DNA of 64,000 nt from Takakia lepidozioides (lineage: Eukaryota > Plantae > Bryophyta): NCBI GenBank assembly GCA_030704615.1, contig CM060732.1:49600001-49664000 (forward strand). Reading direction: 5' to 3'. Shown here piece by piece: positions 1 through 49,856 of this stretch (its first letter is position 1; the number at the start of each line of letters is the position of its first letter). The position numbers and the translations under genes are program-made. Below the pieces are notes generated by a model. It worked only from the letters and a program-made list of their open reading frames with translations. It was not told the DNA's origin and did no database searches.

Positions 1-3000
1 AGGCCTAGCCATTGGTATACACAAATCCATGCACTCACAAGAAACAACTACAAATGCCCGCATCCCCACGCACCTTAAAACTCACCTCCAAATTGTTGAG
101 ATTCACATCAGCCCTTATCCAAAACTACTTATCATTCATTTATATATGCCCTCACACCCGGACGATATAGCCCTTACCCCCGATATTCTACAACAAATTG
201 TGAGCTTTGTTAACAACCCACTCCACTCCTTATCCACAATCTTCCTCGCAGGTGACTTCAACAGAGACCTATCTATGCTGGGCAGATTACATGACGGTGT
301 ACACTTCCCTCCCTCTCCAAAAGACATAGAATGGACAACTTTTACCCAAACGCATGGATTCCAATACATCACTACAAACCAAACTTTCTCTAGGCAAGGA
401 GGACTAAACTATACCGCATAGCCTCATTGATGGGTACTACCTCAAAATGCCTAGAAATAATCCCACACAGCTGTACAGTACAATCCTGTATGATCCCATA
501 TATAACTCTGACCATTACCCAGTTATTCTCCGCATCCCCCGCATATAGTACCTATAGGTCCAGTCCTAAATGGCCCCTCGCTAGACACAAGGCCACGTAT
601 TCCCACTCCTATTCCCCCCTCCTCTATTCTGGCATTCCAAGCCAAGTTTCGATCCATTTCCGGTACAGTTATATCTGATTTTGAAACAATACTAGATCGA
701 TATTCAGCAAACCCCACCCTTCAAATTTGGGAAGACGCAAGCTCCAAGCTAGAACAAATATTCACTCAAATTACAGAATCCACGCTACATACATGCACAA
801 AGTTCCCTGCTCCAGTACAAACTGAACGATAAAAAATAAACGGAGGATATTTGACAAGAACACAACAGAGAAAATAGCAAGCACAATTAAATATCCACCA
901 CAAAATCCGCAAAGCTATTACAATCCTCTCATCTGACCCACGAGACCCCCAATGGAGAAATACCCCATCTATTATAGACCTAAACACAATAGTAGCTTGC
1001 AGCATAGATTTCCCGATACCCCGGAATGATGCAGACAACATACATGGCTCATATCTCTCTCCCGAATTGGTCGAGATGCAAAGAACAATGCTTATAATAT
1101 CACCAAACAACAATCCAAAGACAACCAGAAGAAATTTGTTCAATCATACTGTAAGATGCTACAAGACAAACCTCGCCTCATACATAAATCAATCTTCAAC
1201 CCTTCCCCCTCTTTTTCTTTAGATGCGATACGAGACATCGCATGAACTCTACACACCTCTCCACAGAGGTACCATACAAGGGGACACACTTAGCCCATAT
1301 CTTTTTATTGTCTTTCTAGAACCCCTACTTCGCTGGCTCGCTCGAGGTAACATAGGATACCAATACATTACGTCTCCCAATAACATCCCAGCAGCTGCCT
1401 ATGCAAATGATCTTGTACTGCTATCCAACAAATCCAGTCATCTCAATCGACAAGTGAAAAAACTAGAAAGATTCAATAAATGGGCAGCAATGGAACTAAG
1501 TTTACATAAATGTGCTATCACAGCGATCAGCCATCATACCAAACACAACACACAAGCCCTCTCAAGAATACTAAATAACACGGTGCTATATAATACCCAA
1601 CCCTTCCCATATTCGGACCAAGACGACCCATACACATATTTGTGTATACAATTGACACCATCTCTTAAGTGGAGTGCTCAAAAAGACATAACCCAGAAAA
1701 AACTCCTCTCACAAGCATCTGCTTTATTGAACTCGCCAGCCACAATGCGTCAGAAATTATTTATTCTCGACACAGTACTCAGAACTTCTATAGAATATCC
1801 TTTTCATGCAGCACCATTCTCTATCCCGGACATAAACGCACTGGATAGAATCATTATACGCTTATCGAAACAAATATGTGGACTCCCAAATAGCACCCCC
1901 AATGCACTAGTGTAGTTACCCAGGAGCCTCTATGGTATCGGTACTACAATTTAGCTGAGGCCTACGCTAAAACGTTGGGAACGCAGCTGCAGGAAGCTCT
2001 AAACAATATTGTAAACTGGGGAATATTTATCAAGGACTCCTTAAGCATGTCGCCTCGAAATTTGGTGGCTTAGCAAATTTACCGGCTATCAACCCCATTG
2101 CATGCACCCACTCCCCTATCACCAGGACCCTCTTCATACTCAAACATATGCACATTACTCTGGACACTACTATGCCCACAATCCAACTTTATTACACATC
2201 CCTAGAAAATGCTTGGGACACAAGCCCACAAAATTCATCTCTTCAATCCATACAACATACCTCGTAAACAAACCATTCTAAAATTCTTTATGCAATTTAA
2301 CATCACCACAGTCAGACAACTTACAGATGCTAATGGCACCAGACTTATTGACCCACATGCTTTTCGACTAAAATACCCTAAACCATCATCGCGCTCCCAA
2401 CATGTTCATTTGCAACACCTCCAAACACTATGTTTTCCCACTCCTGCTTGTCTAACCCACACATGTCCAAGACAATGTAACTCTTCGCCCCATCACCCAT
2501 GGGAGCTACTCCCTTGCTATTCATCAAGCCCGATGCAAAACCAAATCCAATCACTATTCCATGGCTTCATCCTAAACCCAACAAGCGTCCACCCCACACA
2601 ACCCGCTCAAACACCCCAACCACAACCCCCACAACCAAATACTATATTGTCCCCACTTACTATTCAACCCACAGGACACCCCGTAACACTCGCCCACACA
2701 TTAGTGGAAATACAAGGCGTAAACCTTGTCTAGCAAGACTATGCCCAGATATTTTGCTAGTCCAGGGATTTTCTATTCAGGAATTGCCGCCGACAGAACC
2801 GCTTCCATCTCTCAAAATACATTTTTTGGAATTTGCATTCTGCCATGATCGAAATCCAGATCAATCAATTATGTACAAACATGAAAAATATGACCCAATC
2901 ATACATGCCCTCCGTCACAGAGGCTGGAACACATCACCTCTGACCGTCATCACTGCGGGTGTCAGGGGCGGTGCTCATACCCATAATATCCAAGGTTTAA

Positions 3001-3134
3001 AAGATAATCTTAACCTACCACCCAAATACACTACACCTCTACTACGAGCCTTGCATTTCACGACTATTTCATCACTCACATCCTTAATCCTCAATAAACG
3101 TAAGATTGAAAGTGGCCAGCTAGCCACTGTGTGA
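1..3134 (+). mobile_element. Degenerate non-LTR retrotransposon with APE endonuclease, RT and C-terminal restriction-like endonuclease (Dualen/RandI-like); 5' end may lie outside the window
   Basis: APE motifs IHLYMPSH, LAGDFN (29-421) and YNSDHYPV (~500-525). RT motifs RGTIQGDTLSPYLF and AYANDL (degenerate YADD) in 1223-1915. RLE motifs PDILLVQG...FLEFAFC.D...KHEKY..I...L...GW...ITAGVRG in ~2735-3134. Multiple stops, frameshifts and internal deletions (~1240, ~2730). Confidence 0.8.
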
Positions 3135-3151
3135 CAGGTTACGGTTTGGAT

Positions 3152-3224
3152 AGAGCCCACCCCTGAAAGGTGGCAGTACCCGCAAGGGGAAGAGGCTCTT
3201 AATTACGCTAGCTTCGGTTGGCGT
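3152..3224 (+). other. Structured 3' UTR RNA element of the LINE: multi-branch junction plus cUUCGg hairpin
   Basis: agagcc(3152-57)/ggctct(3194-99) encloses a cacc/ggtg hairpin and AGTA-ccc-GCAA-ggg-GAA. It is followed by acgctagc-TTCG-gttggcgt (3205-3224). Confidence 0.6.
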
Positions 3225-10543: not shown

Positions 10544-11056
10544 CTATTCTTGCTTCTTGTCCCGAGAGACACGAGCTCGATGCTTGAGCTCCGCTCTCTT
10601 CCATTTCACAAGCAGGCTAGTCAAAGTGAACAAGCTGTTGACAAGAATTAGGGTAGACACCAACAGCAAGGGGCCCGACCACACGGTGGACAGGAAAACA
10701 CCCTGGGAATCAACATAGGGCTGTCGCGCAAAGCTCTTCCAATGCCGGTTCAGGTATGTGTTCAATCTCTCTGCATAGTACACACACAAAAGCACAGAAA
10801 AGAAGAGAGTCATGTGCACATTGCTGTGCTTCCTGCTGGCCACGGCCACTGCGAGCATCACAACATGGAAGACCATCAGACCTATCAACCACGGCTCTGT
10901 CCAATCAACTGCATGAACAAATCCAAGGATAGGGTCCAGAAAGCTGCCGCCTCCCGCTGTGAAATCCTGAAATTGCCTGCGCAGATCGCCTGTCACTCCC
11001 TCCACAATCGACGCCATCTCGTCCATTGCTGCTGCTGCTGCTGCTGCGATTTCCAT
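10544..11056 (-). CDS. TMEM18: Transmembrane protein 18 homolog, single exon (ATG 11056; ORF open to GTG 11152)
   Basis: FVHAVDWTEPWLIGL..FH...YYAERLN...HWKSFARQPY.DSQGVF.S..WSGPLL...KWKRAELK is the TMEM18 signature. Confidence 0.9.
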   Translation of the reverse strand: MEIAAAAAAAMDEMASIVEGVTGDLRRQFQDFTAGGGSFLDPILGFVHAVDWTEPWLIGLMVFHVVMLAVAVASRKHSNVHMTLFFSVLLCVYYAERLNTYLNRHWKSFARQPYVDSQGVFLSTVWSGPLLLVSTLILVNSLFTLTSLLVKWKRAELKHRARVSRDKKQE

Positions 11057-11336
11057 CCTTGCAGCTTCAATCAACCCAACCCGCAGAGTGGAGTGCAGAT
11101 CGTCAGCGAAGCGAGATCCGAGTGTAAACGTGGGTCCTGTCGTCCTGTCCACTCCGTGTGTCTGTCTCTGTCTCTGGACAGTTGCAAGACATGTACGTAT
11201 ATTTCCAGGTGGTGTACATGGAGCTCAAAAATACATACCTGCGGTATTTTTACGCAGCTAAATTCACGCCGGGTAGAAAGGAGGAAGCCCTGCGCTTCGG
11301 AATTTGTCCCGGGCTACGGAATACTCGTCCCGCGGT

Positions 11337-11571
11337 ATGGAATCTTTAGCCCAGACTACAGAATCTTAAGCCCAACGGAATCTTGTCCTGGGCTTTGCCA
11401 TGCGGGCGGAAACTTGGGCTATGGAATCTTTAGCCCAGACTACAGAATCTTAAGCCCAACGGAATCTTGTCCTGGGCTTTGCCATGCGGACGGAAACTTG
11501 GGCTATGGAATCTTTAGCCCAGACTACAGAATCTTAAGCCCAACGGAATCTTGTCCTGGGCTTTGCCATGC
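11337..11571 (+). repeat. 84-bp tandem repeat (~2.8 near-identical copies) built of ~21-bp GGAATCTT subunits; diverged copies at 11865-11970
   Basis: atggaatctttagcccagactacagaatcttaagccc... starts at 11337, 11421 and 11505. Confidence 0.95.
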
Positions 11572-12283: not shown

Positions 12284-14005
12284 TCAAGTTGTTGAGGAGA
12301 TGAGCCCATGGTTGAGCCAGGGATGTTGCATACAATCCCCGGCAGACGGCCGCTTCTTTGGCATGAAATTGAGCAACGGAGAGAGGAAGTCTGCGAGTTC
12401 TCGGGCATCGTGCTCTACAAACTTGTAGGCCTCCACAAACAGCCTTTGGAGAGGATACAGGTCACGTCCTTTTATGCGGTGCAGATCACCGTGCCTGGTG
12501 AAGTATGAGTTGGAGTTGTGGCCCCTTGAAGCCATCTTGCGAGGGATGGGGCCGAGAACTTGCATGATTTGTGCGAGATGGTCCTCGTCCCGAGAGAATT
12601 CATCTCCGCCAGTTCTTGGATCAAACAAGACATTGCCAGTTGCCAGTTCAAATATGAGACATGCGAACGACCACATGTCGGCTGAAGTTGAGTACTTGGC
12701 TCTTAGTAAAACTTCTGGGCATCGATATGGCCGTGTTTGAATGTCCTGAGTGTATTGCCTGTAAGTCCAGCAGGATGTTCCCAAATCCACTATTTTACAT
12801 CGCGTGTCCAACTCAATCAAGTCTTTAGAGATTGCGGACCTTTGGCCAGATGCCCTCTTGGGGGATATGTCGATAAAGGTAACTTGTGACCGGGCTTTCT
12901 TCAGTTTATGGTGATCATCACCAACTTGTACAGGAATTGAAGGTTTAATCTCAAGCTTTTCCATAGAAGTCTCTGGGAGATCTGCGACTGGTGCAGCTCC
13001 CACAATTTCTCTCCCATCTCCACTTGGTGGAAGGACTGTTGACTCCTGAATGTTTAAGCCTTTCTCTGTATCAAGTACTTCAGGCTCATGAACAATTTTG
13101 CCATCTTTCTTATCCTTCCGTTTCAACTGCTTCTTTTTGTGGTCTCTGGAGAGCATAGCAGCACCCAGTACTGGAATACTGGCCGGTACGGTTGATTGAC
13201 GATTCCCACTGACACAAGCACTGTCAGAAAGCCGAGGGTCTTTGTTGGGATCCAAAGGGGACATTAGGAGGATGTTCTCAGGCTTCAGATCAGTGTGAAT
13301 GATGTTCAGTTGGTGCAAGTAATGGAGGCCTACCAAAATATTTTTGGCCAATTCCTTCACAATGTGAAGAGGCAATCCTTTATACTTTGTATGTTTTATC
13401 AGGGTGAGCAGGTTGTCTCCCAAGAACTCAAACACCATGCATATATGACGACCATTGGGTCCTTTGTGATCAAAATGGTCAAGTAGCTTAACAACGCCCT
13501 TGCGACCTTCAGGGTCTCCAGCTCCTATCTCCTTCAAGATTTTGATCTCCGCTTGCGCTGCGAGGGTGCAATCCCTTGCATTGTTCTGTATCTTCAATGC
13601 GACGCATATTTGGTCCTGCGTGTCCCAAGCAAGCCAGACTGTGGAGAAGGCCCCCCACCCCAACTTTCTGTGCACCTTATAACGACTAGACTTGAAAGAG
13701 TTGCCCACATGAACGGCTAGAGTTTCTCGCTTATGCTCAAAATTATCATCGGTATCAGAATCTCCCACCGCCTCACTACTGTGACTCTCTGAGTCAGGAT
13801 CAGTGGTCTCATCGCTCCCCATGTCTGATACGTCGGTACCATTATGGGTGGACTCAGAGAGAGCTATGACATTTTTCTTATACCTGGACACTTTGGACTT
13901 CTGGGACACTCTTCCTTTTGGCTTCTTGGCCTTCCTGCCAGGAGGCACTGATATGGCTTTTCTGGTCTTCCGTGGTTCTGCTGACCTGCCCTCTCTTCGA
14001 GGCAT
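12284..14005 (-). CDS. SRPK: Serine/arginine-rich protein kinase (SRPK family), single-exon CDS, 573 aa
   Basis: KLGWGAFSTVWLAWD, ALK, HICMVFEFLGDNLL, HTDLKPEN, long spacer insert, KIVDLG..CW...DIQTR.YRCPEV, FELATG..LFDP, RDEDHLA. Confidence 0.93.
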   Translation of the reverse strand: MPRREGRSAEPRKTRKAISVPPGRKAKKPKGRVSQKSKVSRYKKNVIALSESTHNGTDVSDMGSDETTDPDSESHSSEAVGDSDTDDNFEHKRETLAVHVGNSFKSSRYKVHRKLGWGAFSTVWLAWDTQDQICVALKIQNNARDCTLAAQAEIKILKEIGAGDPEGRKGVVKLLDHFDHKGPNGRHICMVFEFLGDNLLTLIKHTKYKGLPLHIVKELAKNILVGLHYLHQLNIIHTDLKPENILLMSPLDPNKDPRLSDSACVSGNRQSTVPASIPVLGAAMLSRDHKKKQLKRKDKKDGKIVHEPEVLDTEKGLNIQESTVLPPSGDGREIVGAAPVADLPETSMEKLEIKPSIPVQVGDDHHKLKKARSQVTFIDISPKRASGQRSAISKDLIELDTRCKIVDLGTSCWTYRQYTQDIQTRPYRCPEVLLRAKYSTSADMWSFACLIFELATGNVLFDPRTGGDEFSRDEDHLAQIMQVLGPIPRKMASRGHNSNSYFTRHGDLHRIKGRDLYPLQRLFVEAYKFVEHDARELADFLSPLLNFMPKKRPSAGDCMQHPWLNHGLISSTT

Positions 14006-20370: not shown

Positions 20371-21012
20371 ACTCTTGACACCACCCACAACAGTCAGTCT
20401 GCCTAAAAGCTATGTCCAGCATTTGGACTGGGTGTGCTTGTCAGTGCAAACCATCACTCTTCTTGGATCATGCATTGCAGAGCAACCTTATTTTCCACTA
20501 TAGCCACTACCTGTAGTGTGGATGTCTGGTTCTACATGGAAATGATCAATGGAAGAGTATTACAAAGTGGAAAGTTGGCTATAATGACTGGAATGTAGAG
20601 CAATGACGCTGTTTGGGCTGTGGATTTTTGTTTTGTTCCTTCCATGGTTTGAAATTGTGTGTTTCTAAGCATGTGGATGCCGAGTGATGCCTTGAATATA
20701 TGAGACACATCTGTGATGTTCAAGAATGTGGTTAGAGCTGCACTTTGTACCTGAGAGCTAGCAAATCTTGCCAGGGCTTCACGTTGCTACTAGCGATGAC
20801 TTCTAATAACAACATCCAGATCGATGGGAGATATTCAAGTTTTATGAAAAGATGAACATTTATTTTATTCCATAACCAGTGTAATGACTGTGGGGCTCGT
20901 TTTGAGTAGTACAATGGCAAGCAGACTTGGATTATGAATGCTGTTTATATGATATCTTACTTATTTTCAATTGGTTTAGATTTCAGATTGTTTGGATTTT
21001 CAATTAATGTCA

Positions 21013-22921
21013 TCAATATATGAAGCAAGACGTTTGTTTTGTTTTGTTTAGCCTTGGTGCTTGGTATCATTGGAAAGCCCTCGACGAGGAGGGGTGCACG
21101 GGCTTGGTCTCATGATTTTTGGACCTGCGGTGTGGGAGGTGTGGAATTTCAAGTACTTTGGATCGTTGGAAATTCCCCAAAAATAGCAAAGTGGAATTCC
21201 TGGGACAATGGTTGGAGCCTTGAGAGGAGAGATATAAAGGGAAAGGTCTCGGTTCAAATCTGGTCGGAGGCTCTGTGGAAAAAAAATGCATTTGGACTTA
21301 GATGACATTGGACCCTTGGTCCAACGGCAGAGGCTACCCTTGTGAAGCCTTAAAACAAGATGGGAGAATAATCTCATGTCCTCTCAAGTATTGAACAAAA
21401 TGACAAGGGGCGAGGAAGGAGAAGCGTGCATGCACACGAGAGGAGGATCTTCACAAGTGAACTGACAAAAATCTCACACGTATTGTGCTAGGACACCTTT
21501 ACACATACATACACCAGCGTACATCTGCTGCCTAACACAAGGTCAGGCCGCCACTTTATACAAACCCTAGCTGCCTGTCACGCCGCCTTGTGCTGAGCCC
21601 ACGACGCCTTTTCATAGCCCTAGATCTATTGAACGGCTAGGATGCAGCCACAAGTATTAACTAACCCTGGCTACGCCATCATTGTAACGGCTTTAACGAT
21701 ACTTACGCCAAAAAATTATACTACAAATGAGTATCGCCGCTTTGGATGAATAAGGAGAATGCTAGATGAGGAGAGAACGGTCCTTCACACCCTGGAGGTC
21801 GCACTTGGGCCTCGACATAGGAGACACACTTGCATATTGCACTTGGGCTTAGATGACACTTGACACTTAGGCCAGCGGCACAGGCTACTCAATATATGAA
21901 GCGAGACGTTTGTTTTGTTTTGTTTGTTTTGTAGATTTGAGATGTTCCAAACTGCAGGGGCCATCCTAAGTGCTTGGTACTGTTGGAAAGCCCTCAACGA
22001 GGAAGGGTGCATGGGCTTGGTCTCACGATTTTTGGACCTGCGGTGTGGGATTTCAAGTACTTTGGGTCGCCGGAAATTCATGAAAATTTGCAAAGTGGGC
22101 ATTCCTGGGACAATGGTTGGACCTCGACAGGAGAGATGTCAAGGGAAAGGTCTCCGGTTCAAATCTAGTAGTAAGGCTCTGTGGAAAAAAAAACGCATTT
22201 GGACTTGGATGACATTGGACTCTTGGGCCAACGGCAGAGGCTACCCTAGAGGTCGCACTTGGGCCTCGACGTAGGAGATTGCACTTGGGCTTAGATGACA
22301 CTTGACACTTAGGCCAATGGCAGAGGCTACCCTAGTCAATATATGAAGTGAGACGTTTGTTTTGTTTTGTTTTGTTTGTTTTGTAGATTTGAGATGTCCC
22401 AAATTGTGGGGCCTCACCCTGAGTGCTTGGTCCCATTGGAAAGCCCTCGACGAGGAGGGGTGCACGGGCTTGGTTTCACCATTTTTGGACCTGCGGTGTG
22501 GGAGATGTGGAATTTCAAGTACTTTGGGTCGCTGGAAATTCACGAAGAATTGCAAAGTGGGCATTCCTAGGACAATGGTTGGAGCCTCGACAAAAGAGAT
22601 ATGAAGGGAAAGGTCTCCGGTTCAAATCTGGTCGTAGGCTCTGTGGAAAAAAATCCATTTGGACTTAGATGACATTGGACCCTTGGGCCAACGGCAGAGG
22701 GCTACCCTAGAGGTCGCACTGGGGCCTCGACATAGGAGACGCACTTGCATACATAAATGCATTTGGACTTAGATGACATTGGACCCTTGGGCCAACGGCA
22801 GAGGCTACCTTAGAGGTCGCACTTGGGCCTCGACATAAGAGACGCACTTGCATAAATAGGAGATTGCACTTGGGCTTAGATGACACTTGACACTTGGGCC
22901 AACGGCACAGGCTACCCTAGT
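21013..22921. repeat. Degenerate ~450-bp tandem repeat with ~100-bp subrepeats
   Basis: caatatatgaagNNagacgtttgttttg recurs at ~21015, ~21890 and ~22338. ttggacttagatgacattggaccc..ccaacggcagaggctaccct recurs at least 6 times. Confidence 0.9.
21341..21789. mobile_element. Solo LTR (449 bp) inserted in the tandem repeat
   Basis: Starts TGTGAAG and ends CTTCACA (7-bp inverted termini, TG..CA). Flanked by a CCCT duplication. Removing it restores the repeat unit aggctaccct(a/g)gaggtcgcac. Confidence 0.85.
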
Positions 22922-23229
22922 GGTTTCATGAAAAATGCTTTCTTTTTTTAATTTAATGCATATTTGTTTCCGATAGACATTAGTATTTCATAGGATTTTT
23001 ATTTATTTTTTACCAACAGGGGGGATTGAAGTCCTGATTAATTTTATTAATAAATTATTCGGGGATAACGATATGATTGATAACGACCATATATTCGAAG
23101 ATACATTCTTGATTTTTTTTTAAATATTGTCTAGATAAAATTATTGTTGTGATAAGAACCTATCTTCAAAAAAAATATTAATATTGATATTGATATTTGT
23201 CTTAAAGTTTAAGGTAGTTTGTTTTATGA

Positions 23230-36481: not shown

Positions 36482-37726
36482 ATGGGTAGGGCGAAGAGTT
36501 CCAGGAAGGGGAAGAAGGAATGGAGGGCCAACATTAGCACACAGGACCTTGATGAGTTCGTGGAGAAGGCGGCATTGGAGGCGCGCAGTGGCGGAGCTTT
36601 GCATTCTGTTCTGAGTGATGCTCTTTTCTTTGTTGATCATGCCAAGGACACAACAATCGCACGGAAAGTTAACAAGCATGGGGCGAAGGTTCTGCAGGCT
36701 GACAGCATTCTTCAGCGTAATCCTCTGATTTATGTTCTGCCAGAGCCCGGAAAATCCACGAAGAAACGGAAGGACCGGGATGTGCCCAAGTCCCTGACCA
36801 AGTCTAGAGCCTTGGCATCACTCACCCCTTCCAATACGTGAGGAAAAAGGGAGTGAATCCGTGTTTGACATTGGGGCGACAAGGTCAAGGAAAATGGGGC
36901 TGGCGGGGATGAGAAAGGTGCTCGGAAAAAACAGATGCGTATAGAGGCGCCTGCGGTCGAGGTTGATGCTCCAGGGTGTTCATACAATCCCACCTTTGAC
37001 GACCACCAGGACATTTTGGGGGTCGCGGTGGCCCAAGAAATGCTGAAGGTCTATAACAAGGAATTGCAACCAGCCCCCGTTCTTCTCGTTGTGCCTGGTA
37101 CTGTTCTTGACCCTGAGGACGACTTCTTTCTGGAAGCAGATAATGGCGATGTGGGTGATGAGGAAGATGCCGCGGACGGTGCTGACACGTTGAATTCAGC
37201 TTGGAAGGCTGTGAAGGCAAAGAAGTTGAGGCGGGCAGATCTCAACAGAAGAGCCAGGAGACGTGGGGTGCTTAAAGCCAAAGCCAAAAGGCGACAACTC
37301 GTGAAGGTTGGAAAGATAACCAAAGGATACCGGAGCTAATGGATGACATAGACACGGAGAATCAAGAGAAAGAGCGAGTACGGATTCGTCGAAATGTCTC
37401 AAGGGAGGAGAAGAGGGCCCAGGGACCTCCCCGGCTTGGCAGATACAAGTTCAAGCCAAGAGCTAGTGCAAGTGCTTCTAACGGAGGAGGTAACGGGCTC
37501 CTTGCGAAAACTTAAGGGCTACCCTATGCTTGCAAGGGAAAGGTTCAAGAGCTTGCAAAGGAGTGGCATCCTTGAGGACCGCCAGCCTTCTAAGAGGAAA
37601 GAGAAGAGAAAAAGGGTAGAGTATGTACAGGGCACCAAAGGCCAAAAGGAGCGAGAGATGCATGCTGCCACGCTGGCTGAGCGGGAGGCTAAAAAACATA
37701 CTCTGTCAGCCATCCCTTTGCAATGA
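36482..37726 (+). pseudogene. NOP53: Ribosome biogenesis protein NOP53 (GLTSCR2), intronless, with about 4 frameshifts
   Basis: SSRKGKKEWRANIS, LFFVD (AIM-like), GCSYNPTFDDHQ, PPRLGRYKF, EEVTGSLRKLKG...RERFKSLQR. The frame breaks near 36835, 36870, 37315 and 37455. Confidence 0.85.
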
Positions 37727-39715
37727 GCGAGTGCCACCATCAGCGGCTCTGTGACCAGTGCAAGATCCAGTGGGAAAATTCTGGCACATGGGAGTGTTTC
37801 ACAAGCTCTTTGCTGTAGGGACACGACACTCTGAATTTGCTCTAGTTTATTCTGCCCTCTCACCTGGATGCCATACGCCTATGCTGAAAGCTGGTGCATG
37901 TCACAGCAGGGGTTGCTCAATACATTCATGCATATAGTGCACATTAGTCTGGTTTGATAGAACGGAGACTTTCTAGTGGATGGACTTGTATAGTGGACAG
38001 TGTGTGAAATCTGTTAGACCCTTCAGCTCACTCCCAACACAAATAGTGTAGAAAGCTTCCTTATCACAACAGTGATGGGACCTCAAGGAGCTATCTTTCA
38101 AAATCTTGTGTACAGTGCAAGCAATGTTGTGAAGTTGGAAAGCTTCTGTTCCTCAAAGGGTTGACAGCACGCAAACTGTAAACCTGCTAGTTGCAGTTCG
38201 TGGTTGATGTCTTGAGCCAAACACAGTTCAGCACAGGTTGGATTTGTAGTGTACCCTGCCCCATTTCCTAGATTTGATACATTAGAAGCGCCTGAAAGAC
38301 AAACATGCTGCAACTACCATGTTTGGATTTTATTGAGAGCCATTTCTACAGGTTTTCTTAACACATACCAATCTGAGAGATGTGGTTTTACATGCTGCTT
38401 CTGTAGTAACACTGCGGAAGTCTTTTGGTCTAATTGAGTTAAGCTCTGCCACTTCAGGAGGACTTTCGGGGAGGGAAACTATTTTTCACCTCTTTGGTGT
38501 ATGGCTCGGGATGCTGGCATATTGCATAAATGAATGGAATGTCATGCTTTTATGTTTGAATAGTTGATTATCATTTCTGGCCCAGTGGGTGACGCATTCT
38601 AGTTATAAATGGCTGGGAGCCTCATCCTACCTTATACTAGCCTCTTTGTTACATCAGCAGCTTGGGATTGCTTTGTTTCTGTGAGTGTGAAGGTCTAGGT
38701 CGATTTCTCAGCCTTCATCTGTTCTTGAGTCTATATCATGACCTTCCTCCATCTATTTCTCATCTCCTGCCACTATATCTTAAGTCCCTAATTGCTAGGT
38801 AGAAAGTAGTTGTCAGGAGCTTTGACACAAATGATGACCTAGGCATCATGGACATACAACTCAGGTGGGTCCTATTCATTACAAAAGTTTTTTATTACAA
38901 GCATGGGAAGCTTGGGACAAAGGTAAGTTGCAACCAATAGATTTGCAAAACACAAGAGCTTCAAATGCTTACTGAAACTCAGGAAGAAAAGGGGGGAAGT
39001 GGTAGAGTACCACAGTACAGACCGGTTGCCAAGCACTTGAGGTGTTTGGTCATGAAGGCCTTCAGAAAGCACAAGCAGATTAGCCTCTTGCCCTCGATCT
39101 CATTAAGGCCGGGCAGATGATAAATAAGTAGTGTTTATTGAACAATCCCTTTCAGTGGTACCACCATCTGGTTCTCAATCAGTAGGTGCTGCTAGCCCAT
39201 CTGCAAACAGTCTCTACATGGGACAGACAAAACGACATCAAAGAGGTTAAAGGAAAGGAAGGTTAGGATCCTGGTTGCTTCATGGAGGAGCCAAGACAGA
39301 GAGAGCTACCCTTGGAGATATTTTGGGGGGAACAGTAGCCACAGATGAATCTAGATCTCGGCAAGATGCAACACATGTGAACACTTCCTGGATGTGCTTG
39401 GTAATAGAGGCAGAAACTGAGGATGGGAGGGATGGTCGAAGAGAGAAAACAGCAGTTGTGGTGACAAGCCATGTACATTGGGTTATGTAGTAATTGCTTT
39501 GCCACTTTATATTCCAGCTTAGAATCGATGTATCACAAAACTTCTTTCGTATAGTGTATCTTCTTCCTTGGTTGAGAATGGTGCAGATGCACACAAGAAA
39601 TATAATGTCTACCTAGTCATGTCTACTTTACATGGGCTGGACATTATCAAAAAGGCACCAAAAATATATACATTTGTACAGTTTTGAAGTGTTCGGGGTT
39701 GTGTTTTTGCATCTA

Positions 39716-42369
39716 CTATTGTATTGGTGTAAGCAATTTCCTCACAGGGTTAACCAAAGACCCTCTCCTGGTGGTGGTCTCCTGTGCACACTCCTCTGAC
39801 TGCCCATCACTGGAAGTAGAATCTAACCCAGAGTCAGAAAGGAGTTTGGCCAGTGAGACTGCGAACTCAGGCAAATCTGCTGGGGATGCCAGGGCAGAAC
39901 CCCCTTGTGCCAGAATGAAAGCATTCATCAAGCTCAATCCTGCGCTTGCTGCTAGTCTTCTTCGGGGAAGTGATGAAGTCACTGCTAGTCTGCTTCGGGG
40001 ACGTGACGAGGTCACTGGCTCTCCTTCTGAAAGCCGCCGAGATTTCTTTGAAATAGTAAAAAACTCTTCAACAAGAGATGTCTTGTCTTCTGAATGCTGT
40101 TGATCCATAGCCATCTGGTTGCTCTTCACATATTCAACCGATTGGGGCAAAGCACATTTGGGTTCCAGACTGCGTAGCACCTCTGTAACTTGCGGGGGTG
40201 TTGAAGTGGTGTCCGCAACTTTTGTCACCCTTGGCCAAGCACAGTGGGGACTGGTGACCTTCTCCATCTGCATAGAGAAACAGACAGATCAAAAACCTGT
40301 GGAACACAGTGAAGAGTCCCCACAGTTGAAATCTGTCTGTTCCCAAGAACCAAGAATATGCCCCCCCCCCCCCAACAGAGAAGTGGACCTCAGATAGATT
40401 TTCCACTCCAAAAATCATAAGGCTAAAAATATCTTGATGACCATCAAGTCATCACAAAACTGGCATTGATCAGATCCTATGTACAAGCGCCTCCTCACTT
40501 GAGCAGGGTGGATCCAGGAAAACATCCACCTGCTTCAGTTCCTATTCTTCCTCTGAATGTATTGAGCTGACAAAGGTGAAAAGAGCTACATGTCAGATAA
40601 CCACACAGAGCAAATCCCTGTGATTTTCAGTCTCACACTAGAGATGATCAAAAGCGGGGTGCACACACCATGATTTGGTCTTCCGCTGCCCTGGTGCCTG
40701 CTGTAGTAATCCTGGGGAAAGCACACCGAGCCCCACCCATGAGAACGTTTTCGGTCTCAACCCCCTTCAGTTTTGATTCTTGTCGATGATGGAGAGCACT
40801 CCCATTCCCAGATTGTGCTTTCGTCACCTTCTCTGTGTTAGCTGCTGCTGCAATCCTAGGCCATGCGCATCTCGGCCCCGCCACTGTCACCGTCCCCTCA
40901 ATATCTGGCTTGGGGATAACAGCAGCAGACACCCTGGACCAGGCGCACCTGGCACCCCCCACCAAAGCCTCTGGCTCTCCTTTTCTTTCCACTGATGCCA
41001 CTTTTGCTGCAGATTTAGGCAATGCACACCTTGGCCAGCTCGCTGCCGATTCCAATAGCGCCTCAGCGGTGACAAAACTGCTATTATTCCTGTCCTTACT
41101 TCTATCTAGAATGGAGGAAGAAAGAACTGAATCGGTGGCTGTCGTGGGCTGAGCAGCAATCACACTCCTCGGCCACGAACAATGGGGGCTCATAGCCCCA
41201 CTATCAGCCTCCTTCTCCTTCTCCTCCAGGCTTGTCGACAAATTGATTATGGGTGTTGGAACCTTGCTCTTTCTGGGCCACTCGCAACGTGGGGCAGCCA
41301 TGGTTGACTCCCTGGAATCTGTGGAAGGTATACCTTGCATGCCAGTGCTCCGGCGGGGCCAAGCACAGCGGGGAGCTGGCGGTGCCTCTTCTGTGGCTGC
41401 AGGACTCGACACAAGAGGACGGTCTTTCCTTTGAAGGCGTAATTCAGCTGCGAATTCTTCCTCAAGAGTTGTAGAACGAGAGTGATTTGAGACAAGTGAC
41501 GGTGGACTATCCATGGTGGATACTGCTTGTGGAACCTTCCTAACCACCGAAGCTTCACCCTTCGAACTCAATGCCGCACGCTGTCCCTTCCCTGGCCACT
41601 CACAACGGGGACGAGGATGCTGATCCTTGTAAGTGATTAACGGTCCAAAGGGGCTAAACGTTGGCTTCAAAATCTCCTCCACAGCTTCTGAGTTGTCAAG
41701 CACTTTCTCACATGCTTGTCCTGTCTCCTCCACAACCAAATTCAAGCCACCATGAGGGAGAGAATTGGAAGATACAGTTCTTCGTGGCCAGGGGCAGCAA
41801 GGTCCCCTCGGCATCTCGAGAGGAGTACCTTGCTTCGGAGAGAAAACTCTGGGCCAAGCACAACGGGCCCTAATCTCAGTTGAAGAGGAGGAGACCATTC
41901 CACTCCCTCCCACACCATCTCGATGTATCAACGGTGAAGATGACTCTATGCTTCCATTCGGGGCCAATCCCGCCTCCCTCACCTCACGTCTCTCTTCTAC
42001 AAACACAGCGAAAGACCTTTCCAAAGCCATGGATTTAGACGAGCCCGAAGCTGGAGTTCTGACAGCCTGCTTCGCTTCCCGAGGCCACTTGCAGTAAGCA
42101 TACGTTGTGGGCGTCGTCAAATCCGACAATCCGATTCTGTCCTCCTCCTTCCTCGCTACTAGCGCAACTCTTGGCCATGGACACCGAGGATAAACTTCCT
42201 CAACCCCCTCTGATATCTCTTCTGGTGCTGATTTTTGAGGAACCTGCACCTTCTCCAACACTCTCAATATCGCTGCTTTCTGACGAGCGTACTTCCAATC
42301 TAGTGAATTATCCAAAAAGATGGGCTGCTGCACTCTAGGAGTGAGAAGCTTGGATGCATCCATAGCCAC
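39716..42369 (-). CDS. Orphan ~750-aa disordered protein with 14 dispersed RCxWPR-like motifs; exons 42369-40669 and 40267-39716 (possible 45-nt micro-exon near 40485-40529)
   Basis: A 573-aa ORF and a 185-aa ORF share the motif. Phase-0 donor ATG|GTGTGT and acceptor ctctatgcag|ATG join them in frame. TATA box and CT/AG-rich leader upstream. Confidence 0.85.
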
Positions 42370-42635
42370 ACACGCTGCTCAGTGATGAGCGACCTTTACT
42401 GACTCTCTCTCTCTCTGCTCTTCTCTTCCCTTCTTCTACGTACAAACCTCTACCAAGTACCTATACCACCTAGCTCACCTTTCTCACGCCTAGCTTCTGC
42501 ACACGTCAATGACTGTTCTCTTCTAACTAAGTAGCTTCACTCCAAGCAACACACAAAGCAAAGCAAACACAACACAAAGCAACGCACAAGTATTTTCGAC
42601 AGCAATAATATGATAACTAATCTCCCCTCGCCCAC

Positions 42636-44681: not shown

Positions 44682-47600
44682 TCAGACAACAGCATTTGTA
44701 GGAAGATTTGACTGTTTGGACCTCAAGTAGGCCTTCATGAAAGCGTCTAGTTCCCCACCCATAACTGCTCCTATGTCTGACGTTTCAACACCCGTCCTTA
44801 CATCCTTCACTAGCTTGTAAGGATGAAAGACATAGTTTCTAATTTGCTGGCCCCAATCTGCCTTCACAATATCCCCCTTTATCTCCCTGATCTCTGATGC
44901 CCTCTGCTCCTCAGCTATGACCAGCAATTTGGCTTTCAGAAGGGCCAGCGCCTTTCCCTTGTTCAGAAGTTGGCTGCGCTCCTCTGCAGGTCCCAACCAG
45001 TTGCCCTATCAGAGGACAGGAGAGGATGTACTGCTGTTGTTTGCTGTAGCCTTGTGACCTTAAACCCCGAGAGAGAGAGAGAGAATGTACTCATAAGAGT
45101 TTGTCGTAGCCTTGTGGCCATTGAACCCGCGCCCAGTTTGAGTGGAACAAGAGAAAGAGAGAAAGAACTTTTGCATTAATGCATTGTAAAACACTTCTGA
45201 AAGGAACATGATTTTTTCGGAAGGAAGAACACATGCGCAAGCAACGTGATTTTCATTAGAGGCCAAGAGATAACCTGTACAGCGGACGGCAATGCCAGTA
45301 GGAATGTGCACCATCCGGACAGCCGTTTCAACTTTGTTCACATTCTGCCCACCCTTACCCCCAGCTCGGGATGTGGAAATCTCAAGGTCTGAGTCAGGAA
45401 TGTCCACATTGAGCGCCTCTTCTTCAAGTAGAGGCATCACCTCGACACCTGCAAAGCTCGTCTGACAGAACCTCATGTCATACTCTTTCCCTTGCTTATT
45501 CCTCTCAAGGTGTACTGCAATCTCTCAGCAATAAAGAAGCGGGATCATACTATTACCCTTGAATTTAGAATTGGGAATTTAGGAATTTGTGCTTAAGGAA
45601 ATTAGCCAGCTTTTTCCCCTACAAATCAAGCAGCCTCGGCACAAGATCATGGATAAAACTCATGTAAGGTACTCCTTGAAAAGAAGACTACAGATAGGTT
45701 CTGTATATCTGATGTTTCCATCTGATCCAACCAACAATTATAATGCACACACCTGACGTAGGCCTTTTGCGTTGAAGGGTGACTGCCTAACAAGGCGATG
45801 AGTGCCCTTTTCACTCGACAAATAACCATATGCAAACCGTCCTTCAACTTCTAGAGTGGCAGACTTGATGCCAGCCTCCTCGCCTGGTGACTTCTCCACA
45901 ACCCTTGTCTTATAACCCTGCCGATCAGCCCACCGCACATACATACGTAACAGCATCTCTGTCCAATCCTGCACTGCAAACAGAGGGCAAGCCTTCCTCC
46001 AATCAACTCCCCTGCCTGCAGAGACATAGTAGTAGCTTGCATACTTGAGAACGATCTCAGGGTGTTCCCAAGTGTAGGACTGTATATGAGCTGTGCCCAA
46101 AAATGAGGTGAACATGCTGAATCCGGGATGAATAGACAAAGGAACAGGCAGTCAATCAGGATTGTAGGTTGTTCTCATTAAAACACCCAAGTTACCATCT
46201 TTTGAGGATAGTAGTAAACATCATAATACCTGGTTACAACCATACCCAGCCCTCCATCTAGCCATTGCACATGTTGATAAGCACACAGAGGTATACAGGA
46301 CAAGAGAAAAAGCACAGAGTTGCCACACAGAAAGAACAACAGACCTGGGCATCAGTGCCTCCAGCCCCGGCAGATATTGTAAGTCGGGCTCCTTTCTTGT
46401 CATAAGGACCTGACAGAAGCTTGGCCAGGTCAAAGCGGTCTAGTGCATTCTTGAGCCATGCTACTGTTTCTACTGCTTCCTTAAGCAGCCCTCCATCAAC
46501 TCCCTCTGTCTCCTCCAGCAGCTCCATTATCAGCTGTGCTTCATCTCTCTGCTTGCAGTAAGCACCATCCATACAGGAAGGATGCTTATCAGTCACAAAA
46601 TCTAAAACAAGTGGTCGAAGTTAGTGGCAGGAACTCAAGGAAGTAACTTCTGTGAAGAGAAATGCAAGAGTAAACCCTGATGACAGACGAAATGACTCAT
46701 AACACAACTGAATTGGCGAACTGTGAGTGGTGTCAAGGGACATCCTGGTTCTCAACCACTACTGTGAAGGCATCCTGGTAAGCACAAATGTTGTTAGACA
46801 GATTTTGGTTGAAAAGGCTGCAGAATTGTACAGTTGGTAAAGAATCCAAGTCCCTGAGAGAGGGGGTGAGAGAATCTGTTTGAGGAGGCCAGAAACAGAG
46901 GAGAGTAACAGGAAACAACAAAAATGTAATCAGGCATGGATTTACCTTGGCCTGAAACTCATGGAGCAAGGCGAGGTTTTCCTTCACTTCCATGAGTGCT
47001 GAGAGGATCTGCTGTGCATGGACGGGGTCATCCCAGAGAGTGCTCTCAGCCGCTTGCTGCTCCAAGTCGGCCAAAGTCGACTTTTGCTGGGCAATCCCTG
47101 CTGAACCCAAGACCTCATCCACATGCAGTGCCACCTCTTCCACCTCCTTCCTCACACCATAGAACTCTGCTGGACATGAAGCCCACATTGTATGAGAGAA
47201 AGAAAGAAACTTTCTAACGTCCACACTGGAGGCTCAGAGAGTTATGGACAATGAAAAGCAGAATACAAATAGTGAAAGACTTCTGAAAGGGTTCACTGTC
47301 TCTGAACAAATATTAGTACCGGCCTGACTGACATAACAAAGCGAACAGCCGGAAAAGAAATGCTCCTCATTCTCAATGTCCTACCTACCTTCTCCAGCAG
47401 AAGCCGGGCAGAAGTGTTAGGTACGCTGGAGATTCTCCCATCTGCCAGTCTCTACGCTCAGATTGTCAAAGCCCACCCTAAACCTTCCCAGTGCGTAGCA
47501 CAGATGGAGAGAAAGCTGCACGTGTAGAGCCATCATTCCTTCCATTCTAGCTTCTTGCGGTCATGCTTGGAAGAAGTCTCCGAGCCTTTTGGATTTTGGG

Positions 47601-48686: not shown

Positions 48687-49856
48687 ATGGCGGGGAAGGA
48701 GGCAACAGACTCCGAGTTCTATGCGTGTTATTTGCTATGTTCACTCAATCCTCGCTACAAGGGCCGCCATTATATTGGGTTCACTGTAAACCCCAGGCGG
48801 CGCATCCGACAACATAACGGAGAGATAGGAAATGGTGCATGGAGAACACACACAAAGCGTCCTTGGGAAATGGTACTGTGCGTCCATGGATTTGCAACTC
48901 AGGTGGAAGCTCTCCAATTCGAGTGGGCATGGCAACACCCTACCAGATCTCTTGCGGTAAGAGAGGCAGCTGCGCGGATGCCAGCGTCCGTGAAAGGGTT
49001 CAAACGCCAAATTCATCTGCTTTTCACCATGCTCAATCTTGACCAATGGAACACCAAGGATCTCGAAGTGCAGTTCCTTTCGTCGAAGTATATGCAGTAC
49101 AGGAAAGGGTGTCCAGGGCTTCCTGCCCACATGCACTTCTCAATTGCGCCCGTGGAGGCATTGCCATGCTATGGTGATGGGGAGCAGGTGGACACAGAGA
49201 CGGATATTGGGTCGGATATCGAAGGAGAGATAGAAGGGGAGTTCCACGATAGCAGAGAAGGGGAGAGGGAGGGAGAAGAACAATTAGAGACAGGGATAGG
49301 GGAGATGCACACTGGCAGCGAAAGACAGGGGGAGGTGGAAAAAGATTTGGAGACAGCAGTGAGCAGTGGTTGCCGCACTCCTCTTGCATCTCCTTTCCAA
49401 GAAATGATGAAGCAACGGTATGTGCGAAACCCTCATTTATCACCAGCTTATCGGAGATCCGACAGATCAACACAGCTTGAAGGGATGGATTGCAATCGAT
49501 TGCCGAGAACAAACGAGGAAACACCAGCCCATAGGATGATGTTACCCTGCAGTTCACCACTTTCATCTCCTTTCCAAACTTTGATAGACCAGCACCCAGT
49601 TCTTGAGCCTTCCTCAATTGCAAAGCGTTGTCTGCAGCAAAAGAAAGTGTCTCGATCTTCAGCAGTAGCACCACAGCCTGATCGCTGTTTTCCTTTGCGA
49701 GAATTGAACAATCTGACAAACCCACAAAGGGAGCAGTCTGGAACACTACTTTGTACTCCGCCAATTTTGCGACGTGTGGTTGTGGTGATACCTGACACAC
49801 CTGTAGAGATTTCAAGGGAAGTGATCGACTTAACAGATTCACCTGTGACTTTATGA
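48687..49856 (+). CDS. SLX1: Structure-specific GIY-YIG endonuclease SLX1, single exon, 389 aa
   Basis: FYACYLLCSL...YIGFTVNPRRRIRQHNGEI..GAWRT...RPWEMVL.VHGF....ALQFEWAWQHP; C-terminal SIM-like EVIDLT. Confidence 0.93.
   Translation: MAGKEATDSEFYACYLLCSLNPRYKGRHYIGFTVNPRRRIRQHNGEIGNGAWRTHTKRPWEMVLCVHGFATQVEALQFEWAWQHPTRSLAVREAAARMPASVKGFKRQIHLLFTMLNLDQWNTKDLEVQFLSSKYMQYRKGCPGLPAHMHFSIAPVEALPCYGDGEQVDTETDIGSDIEGEIEGEFHDSREGEREGEEQLETGIGEMHTGSERQGEVEKDLETAVSSGCRTPLASPFQEMMKQRYVRNPHLSPAYRRSDRSTQLEGMDCNRLPRTNEETPAHRMMLPCSSPLSSPFQTLIDQHPVLEPSSIAKRCLQQKKVSRSSAVAPQPDRCFPLRELNNLTNPQREQSGTLLCTPPILRRVVVVIPDTPVEISREVIDLTDSPVTL

Follow-up and report, generated by a model that had tools for sequence, protein, structure and literature searches.

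A repeated RCxWPR motif in a family of disordered green-lineage proteins, with a member in Takakia lepidozioides

Among described systems, those closest to the gene considered here are proteins that dock or link partners through short motifs, often on disordered chains. The FNR-binding repeats of Tic62 and TROL are disordered plastid docking repeats attached to folded domains, with a membrane anchor, and the RVxF/W motif docks proteins on protein phosphatase 1 (PP1). The Rubisco linkers EPYC1, CsLinker, SUPA1 and PYCO1 are disordered chains that carry short stickers in several copies, spaced so that they can cross-link; the stickers are helical in EPYC1 and SUPA1, and that of the diatom linker PYCO1, KWSPRGGS, is extended and contains Trp, Pro and Arg (PMC13655443). 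The criteria for finding linkers are disorder, repeated elements and plastid-like N-termini (PMC11570498), and the known green ones are confined to single orders (10.64898/2026.07.16.738900). Hornworts use RbcS-STAR, and the hornwort candidates PPP2 (AnagrOXF.S4G428300) and Sc2ySwM_228.417.1 are disordered plastid repeat proteins, PPP2 having irregular, erratically spaced repeats and sitting between pyrenoid subunits (10.1101/2024.06.26.600872). Here we describe a gene on the minus strand of a 64,000-nucleotide stretch of the bryophyte Takakia lepidozioides (GenBank assembly GCA_030704615.1, contig CM060732.1, positions 49,600,001 to 49,664,000; hereafter the window, whose coordinates are used throughout), which encodes a 748-residue protein with 14 copies of a short motif that we write as RCxWPR. 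Judged by its sequence, the gene is a member of an old family of disordered proteins from the green lineage, which share a multivalent motif; neither the motif nor its age nor the family appears to have been described, and the architecture is of a type already known.

The RCxWPR proteins resemble the Rubisco linkers in their disorder, in the spacing of their short repeated stickers and in the plastid location that we infer for the family, and they share Trp, Pro and Arg with the PYCO1 sticker. However, their spacers are irregular rather than tandem, their motif is not helical, their spread includes pyrenoid-less ferns, and searches of protein and PDB sequences returned no homology to EPYC1, CsLinker, SUPA1 or PYCO1. 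The two hornwort candidates, likened and set apart by description only, were found as long-period tandem repeats, unlike the RCxWPR gene. The likeness to Tic62 and TROL lies in a Pro/Ser-rich disordered plastid region that carries repeated docking motifs for one enzyme together with a membrane anchor, but their motif is longer, lacks Cys and Trp and occurs on folded-domain proteins. The PP1-docking motif has a similar R-(small hydrophobic)-x-aromatic pattern and extended binding, whereas RCxWPR has Cys or Ser in place of Val or Ile, an invariant Pro-Arg after the aromatic residue, many copies and plastid-like targeting; PP1 is not expected in plastids.

The motif and its relatives

An earlier interpretation of the window, made without database searches (hereafter the sequence-only reading), had listed 14 heptamers, ten of them exact CxWP, and all were found in place, 12 in exon 1 and two in exon 2 (Table 1). 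Residue shuffling (n = 20,000) gave no CxWP in 97.9% of cases and otherwise one or at most two, compared with the ten observed. The motif holds 15 of the 17 Cys and 11 of the 13 Trp, in agreement with the statement that nearly all of these residues lie there, and the twelfth Trp sits in an SWPR half-motif adjoining a motif. Motifs in exon 1 are 22–107 residues apart (median 48). Within-gene DNA repeats are confined to the motif codons, where copies are 73–82% identical over ~22 nt with scattered synonymous codons, and exon 1 with its motifs masked matched no relative. The motifs are therefore not the product of recent tandem duplication, in agreement with the sequence-only reading, and it is the protein motif rather than the DNA that is kept.

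With exon 1 and exon 2 used as separate queries, the exon 1 search retrieved proteins with the same repeated motif and a profile search added more, so that the gene is not the orphan it had been taken for. Named carriers are the chlorophyte Pedinophyceae sp. YPF-701, the streptophyte algae Chlorokybus atmophyticus, Klebsormidium subtile and Closterium (several strains, two paralog groups), and the ferns Pteridium, Adiantum and Ceratopteris (KP509_28G045000); further relatives are transcriptome or metagenome contigs, including those of a GC-rich marine eukaryote. Family members have 3–16 motif copies, with 9–16 in most algal carriers, 3–5 in ferns and 4 in Chlorokybus, and a median motif spacing per member of 22–65 residues. 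Searches of 185,579 prokaryotic genomes and of viral contigs found no relative, and a piranha protein (P0010) that matched through unrelated long repeats was rejected. In accordance with the earlier failure to recognise a family, neither exon nor any relative gave a usable Pfam match (Agenet in one member, E 0.01, and DUF6820, 0.19, fell below the cut-off), searches of NCBIfam, PDB sequences and, by features, the ESM Atlas yielded nothing usable for the family, and a full-text literature search for motif strings, together with topical searches, returned no description of motif or family.

A consensus drawn from 172 motif copies in ~20 proteins reads [G/Y/A]-[P/A]-[R/H]-[C/S]-x-W-P-R, with Trp in 97%, Pro in 99%, the final Arg in 90%, Arg or His in 94%, Cys in 88% and Ser in 12% of copies, and Ala (69%) or, at ~5%, Pro at the x position; these frequencies are partly circular at the positions of the search pattern, positions -3, -2 and +4 having been free. 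Conservation of motif and spacers among relatives, which the sequence-only reading had named as a check on its claim, came out in its favour: motif columns were the more conserved in all six groups compared, with identities of 0.84 for motif and 0.25 for spacer in nine fern-type sequences. The flanks are polarised, hydrophobic before the motif and basic and acid-poor after it, with Lys or Arg in 31% of copies at +5 (background 7%), Ser or Thr in 34% at +6 (18%) and Asp or Glu in 1–4% at +6 to +9 (11%). Ser replaces Cys at the same position across ferns, which suggests that a small side chain is more important at this site than a thiol.

Relatedness is also visible outside the motif. A C-terminal helix, P-R-R-x-L-A-T-S-x-G-L, is common to exon 2, the ferns, Klebsormidium and P0030, and is predicted as a helix in a fern relative; it ties the gene to the members from ferns and Klebsormidium even when the motif is disregarded, and exon 2 with its motifs masked still matches P0009 and fern proteins. 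The uncharged run behind the twin Arg is 26 residues long in the window protein and P0009 and 10–15 in ferns and Klebsormidium, and Closterium, Chlorokybus and the pedinophyte lack the whole block. Closterium and several other members have an N-terminal D-P-L-P-L ... D-W block, and P0030, which has both this block and the C-terminal helix, bridges the subgroups; the match between the N-terminus of the window protein and the algal N-terminal block is due to the motif alone. The second recurring helical motif noticed by the sequence-only reading is present as three L-E-x-x-F segments and recurs in relatives: Klebsormidium and other algae-like members have it, and in ferns it takes the form of an amphipathic helix. 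The earlier reading contained neither the family nor its transit-peptide-like N-termini nor the conserved C-terminal helix.

The fern proteins all end, in their last 12 residues, with a second twin-Arg segment, G-R-R-T-L-L-V-F-I-K, of which exon 2 has a loose counterpart only. A dUTPase assignment of the C-terminal block was rejected, as it came from one mycobacterial-type sequence set only (E 0.02–0.2) and RSG and GxxDxxYRG (motifs II and III) are absent from the family. In a Klebsormidium-type homolog (L001, 5020-7427) an intron likewise separates a first, motif-rich part from a second part that has the twin-Arg helix, so that P0004 is only the first exon of its gene. In the homolog of the GC-rich marine eukaryote (L005–L008, ~2000–3200) copy number differs between samples through tandem duplication, and the tandem unit also carries a second motif, G-K-V-W-K-Y-D. 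Adjoining another homolog (L003, 1733-4539), gene pieces matching AP2, B3 and, weakly, Aux/IAA (PB1) stand in a row and seem to make up a RAV-type factor that includes a PB1 domain.

Structure prediction agrees with the disorder suspected earlier. AlphaFold2 on exon 1 gave no domain, with a mean predicted local distance difference test score (pLDDT) of 35 and no residue above 70, a low confidence that is partly expected from a single-sequence run; a fern member run with an alignment (pLDDT 41) was likewise unfolded except for short helices. The motif contains two prolines and lies outside any predicted helix; two copies are drawn as short strands at pLDDT 50–56, below usable confidence.

Gene structure and surroundings

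Transcript contigs of two runs, X1 and X2, from two studies of the same organism span 39500-42429 and 39501-42630 and skip exactly the 401-nt GT-AG intron, from which we conclude that the gene is real, spliced and expressed, as the sequence-only reading had supposed. That these runs are RNA is a guess, but it is difficult to see what else would remove the intron so precisely. Genome and transcripts differ at six sites, all outside the motifs. The earlier statement that the motif continues across the intron holds in that both exons contain motifs, although no single motif is split by it. The length given, ~750 residues, is close to the 565 + 183 counted; the start had been placed at 42369, which is a GTG, the ATG lying at 42363. 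Contig ends cannot mark the true transcription start; read mapping extended to 43400.

Table 1 Features of the RCxWPR gene in window coordinates
Feature	Start	End	Strand	Remark
TATA-like TATATAA	42639	42645	-	just past end of longest transcript contig; weak promoter hint, read from sequence
5' leader	42364	42630	-	as far as transcript contigs reach; no upstream ATG; in-frame TGA at ~42379-42381 just before start
Exon 1, coding part	40669	42363	-	565 codons; disordered; 12 motif copies, first at residue 59
Intron	40268	40668	-	401 nt, GT-AG, phase 0; joint 40267/40669 in contigs of X1 and X2
Exon 2, coding part	39716	40267	-	183 codons and stop; 2 motif copies and C-terminal block
3' untranslated region	39500	39715	-	covered by both transcript contigs
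Motif 1, PRCPWPR	42169	42189	-	
Motif 2, AYCKWPR	42079	42099	-	
Motif 3, ARCAWPR	41848	41868	-	
Motif 4, PCCPWPR	41782	41802	-	
Motif 5, PRCEWPG	41590	41610	-	
Motif 6, PRCAWPR	41353	41373	-	
Motif 7, PRCEWPR	41272	41292	-	
Motif 8, PHCSWPR	41167	41187	-	
Motif 9, PRCALPK	41014	41034	-	degenerate; overlaps SWPR half-motif at 41029-41040
Motif 10, ARCAWSR	40933	40953	-	degenerate
Motif 11, PRCAWPR	40855	40875	-	
Motif 12, ARCAFPR	40711	40731	-	degenerate
Motif 13, PHCAWPR	40229	40249	-	exon 2
Motif 14, PKCALPQ	40142	40162	-	exon 2; degenerate
L-E-x-x-F helical motif, copy 1	41986	42027	-	similar segments in P0012, P0023, P0026, P0028, P0030 and fern N-terminal helix
L-E-x-x-F helical motif, copy 2	41428	41469	-	closest to Klebsormidium P0023, residues 152-165
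L-E-x-x-F-like helical motif, copy 3	40037	40078	-	degenerate
Recent 33-nt in-frame tandem duplication	39949	40017		start of C-terminal block
Conserved C-terminal block	39887	39970	-	P-R-R-x-L-A-x-S-x-G-L, then 26-residue uncharged run ending in A-x-A

Directly upstream of the RCxWPR gene lies a multi-exon gene for an organellar-type peptide chain release factor (44682-47224, minus strand). A NOP53 homolog (36482-37726, plus strand) is divided over three short open reading frames (ORFs), by small introns or in a broken copy. Intronless ORFs encode an SRPK-like kinase (12284-14005, minus strand) and an SLX1-like GIY-YIG nuclease (48687-49856, plus strand), and an 84-nt tandem repeat at 11336-11571 (2.8 copies, 99% identical) stands just upstream of a small intronless membrane-protein ORF (10544-11152). 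Diverged transcript contigs (80–95% alike) at 38625-38805 and 39076-39404 end loosely, so that these places are dispersed repeats or paralogous fragments. A non-coding repeat array at 21000-22930, with periods of ~462 and ~103 nt, resembles a transposon end or satellite; the CxWP strings at 21.8–22.9 kb (C-R-W-P-K) are chance translations of this DNA repeat and were rejected as further motif copies.

A proposed docking scaffold and rival readings

Of the three options offered by the sequence-only reading, the multivalent scaffold or linker fits best, and the heme sensor and the peptide precursor failed the tests set out below. We put the chances at about even that the protein is a multivalent scaffold, docking on a conserved acidic partner in the stroma. 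A short motif that stays invariant across the green lineage and occurs 3–16 times among drifting disordered spacers suggests a docking motif for one conserved folded partner. Each copy would bind in extended form in a pocket of that partner, which would bury Trp and Pro, with the small residue (Cys or Ser) alongside, and the two Arg and the downstream flank would meet a surface that should be acidic, since this flank is basic and acid-free. Weak single contacts 20–100 residues apart would allow one chain to hold or cross-link several partner molecules, and valency could turn them into a cluster or condensate; the Ser or Thr just behind the motif and the motif Cys are plausible off-switches. 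In streptophytes, the C-terminal twin-Arg helix may anchor the chain to a membrane or to a second partner. Short motifs of disordered proteins usually turn over fast, and this one reads alike in the pedinophyte, Chlorokybus, Closterium and ferns, so that its partner should be equally old.

The ancestral location would be the chloroplast stroma, as suggested by the N-termini of algal and fern members. These have long, mostly acid-poor leaders rich in Ser, Ala and Arg, with mostly 0–2 acidic residues among the first 30 and the first strict motif at residue 123–310, compared with residue 59 in the window protein. The leaders of most relatives look like plastid transit peptides, and mitochondrial targeting is also possible. 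The P0009 transcript (L010, 132-370) contains poly-C runs and an ATG upstream of the called start, which is probably misplaced; the real N-terminus is likely to be longer and to resemble a transit peptide. Several points speak against a stromal scaffold. Plastid targeting of the family was assessed from composition and inspection by eye rather than with a predictor, and the window protein has no transit-peptide-like start and an acidic second residue. From the position of its first motif, the in-frame stop upstream and the lack of an ATG in the leader, it seems to have lost ~100 N-terminal residues or to use an exon further upstream; this copy may thus be cytosolic, follow another import route or have such an exon. 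The pedinophyte and Chlorokybus proteins are tied to the family mainly through the motif itself, and no match came from Chlamydomonas, Physcomitrium, Marchantia or Arabidopsis, which could reflect loss or the length and shared-word limits of the searches, from which absence from seed plants, Chlamydomonas or Physcomitrium does not follow.

Rubisco is one candidate for the partner, which we consider conceivable but rather doubtful. RCxWPR would then be a Rubisco-binding motif older than the chlorophyte-streptophyte split, with Cys as a built-in redox switch, and the family would supply the missing pyrenoid linker, tether or accessory of pedinophytes and streptophyte algae, kept in another capacity in ferns and Takakia after pyrenoid loss. 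The pedinophyte, Chlorokybus, Klebsormidium and Closterium groups, from which all named algal carriers come, bear pyrenoids, and most of these carriers have more copies than the ferns. Disorder, repeats 20–120 residues apart and plastid-like N-termini are also what the linker criteria (PMC11570498) look for, the PYCO1 sticker is of comparable make, and our literature search found no linker described for streptophyte algae. However, RCxWPR spans the whole green lineage and not a single order as known green linkers do, its prolines contrast with the helical stickers of EPYC1 and SUPA1, the CsLinker supplements contain no WPR string, and hornworts use RbcS-STAR. Moreover, ferns keep the motif without pyrenoids, there are 14 motifs in this copy from a land plant and only four in the Chlorokybus protein, and several algal members have an isoelectric point of 6–7. 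If instead the motifs stick to one another, by Arg-Trp cation-pi contacts and strand pairing, with Cys forming reversible disulfides or glutathione adducts, the protein would be a redox-tuned, self-condensing sensor. We regard this as unlikely: the prevalence of Cys beside Arg and the short strands drawn by AlphaFold2 fit it, but that strand hint is below usable confidence, Ser occupies the Cys site in the same position across ferns, and the fixed prolines and flank polarity suit a folded surface better. A thylakoid Tat (twin-arginine translocation) signal is resembled by twin Arg, a long uncharged run and a final A-x-A, as in the C-terminal block here and in P0009, and together with the basic downstream flanks this raises the distinctly unlikely case of a membrane-surface tether, whose motifs would bind anionic plastid lipids through Trp, Arg and possibly acylated Cys while the helix inserts in the thylakoid like a Tat signal anchor. 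The run is short in ferns and Klebsormidium, its mean hydropathy is low (~1.1), some members lack the block, an NCBIfam scan gave no Tat-signal match, and lipid binding would not need so strict a sequence.

Binding of nucleic acids is a slightly poorer prospect still. P-R-x-x-W-P-R-K is spaced like the AT-hook sequence P-R-G-R-P-x-K, and repeats with basic flanks in a disordered chain would suit a protein that organises plastid nucleoids or RNA granules, but the G-R-P core is absent from the family consensus (C-x-W-P), Pfam gave no AT-hook match and the net charge is only mildly positive. The sequence-only reading had also proposed a heme sensor with CP-type sites. The concentration of Cys in the motif, the C-P of two of the 14 copies and the basic residue before Cys, shared with heme regulatory motifs, point that way, yet C-P occurs in just 5% of the 172 family copies, and each motif has a single Cys, variably spaced and replaceable by Ser (12%), which makes heme or metal binding by CP-type or multi-Cys sites very unlikely. 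We give hardly any credence to the last of the earlier options, a multi-core precursor of ribosomally synthesised and post-translationally modified peptides (RiPPs) with Cys-Trp cross-linked cores. Plant burpitide and fungal MSDIN precursors share repeated short cores with Cys or Trp, and the C-x-W spacing would fit, but the gene lacks their signal peptide, cleavage sites and cyclase: exon 1 has no N-terminal hydrophobic signal (best 19-residue hydropathy 0.97, at residue 466), Asn or Asp reaches at most 12% at any flank position with no fixed-distance enrichment, neither exon contains a domain, and no BURP or other tailoring gene was found among ten window ORFs scanned, which include NOP53, the release factor, the SLX1-type nuclease and the kinase and do not cover every window gene. 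Ser variants, kept at orthologous positions, cannot cross-link, the cores stay alike throughout the green lineage, and the presence of other conserved blocks argues for an intact protein. A role in sperm, which the sequence-only reading had entertained, is unlikely too, since Closterium has no flagella and nevertheless has two paralogs.

For the multivalent docking scaffold, the RCxWPR motif offers a precise 8-residue bait in tractable organisms (Closterium, Klebsormidium and Ceratopteris, KP509_28G045000). Should Rubisco be the partner, the family would bear on pyrenoid construction in the algae related to land plants and would provide a linker matched to plant-type Rubisco. Should it be another protein, the family would still point to a plastid assembly, so far unrecognised, in algae and seed-free plants.

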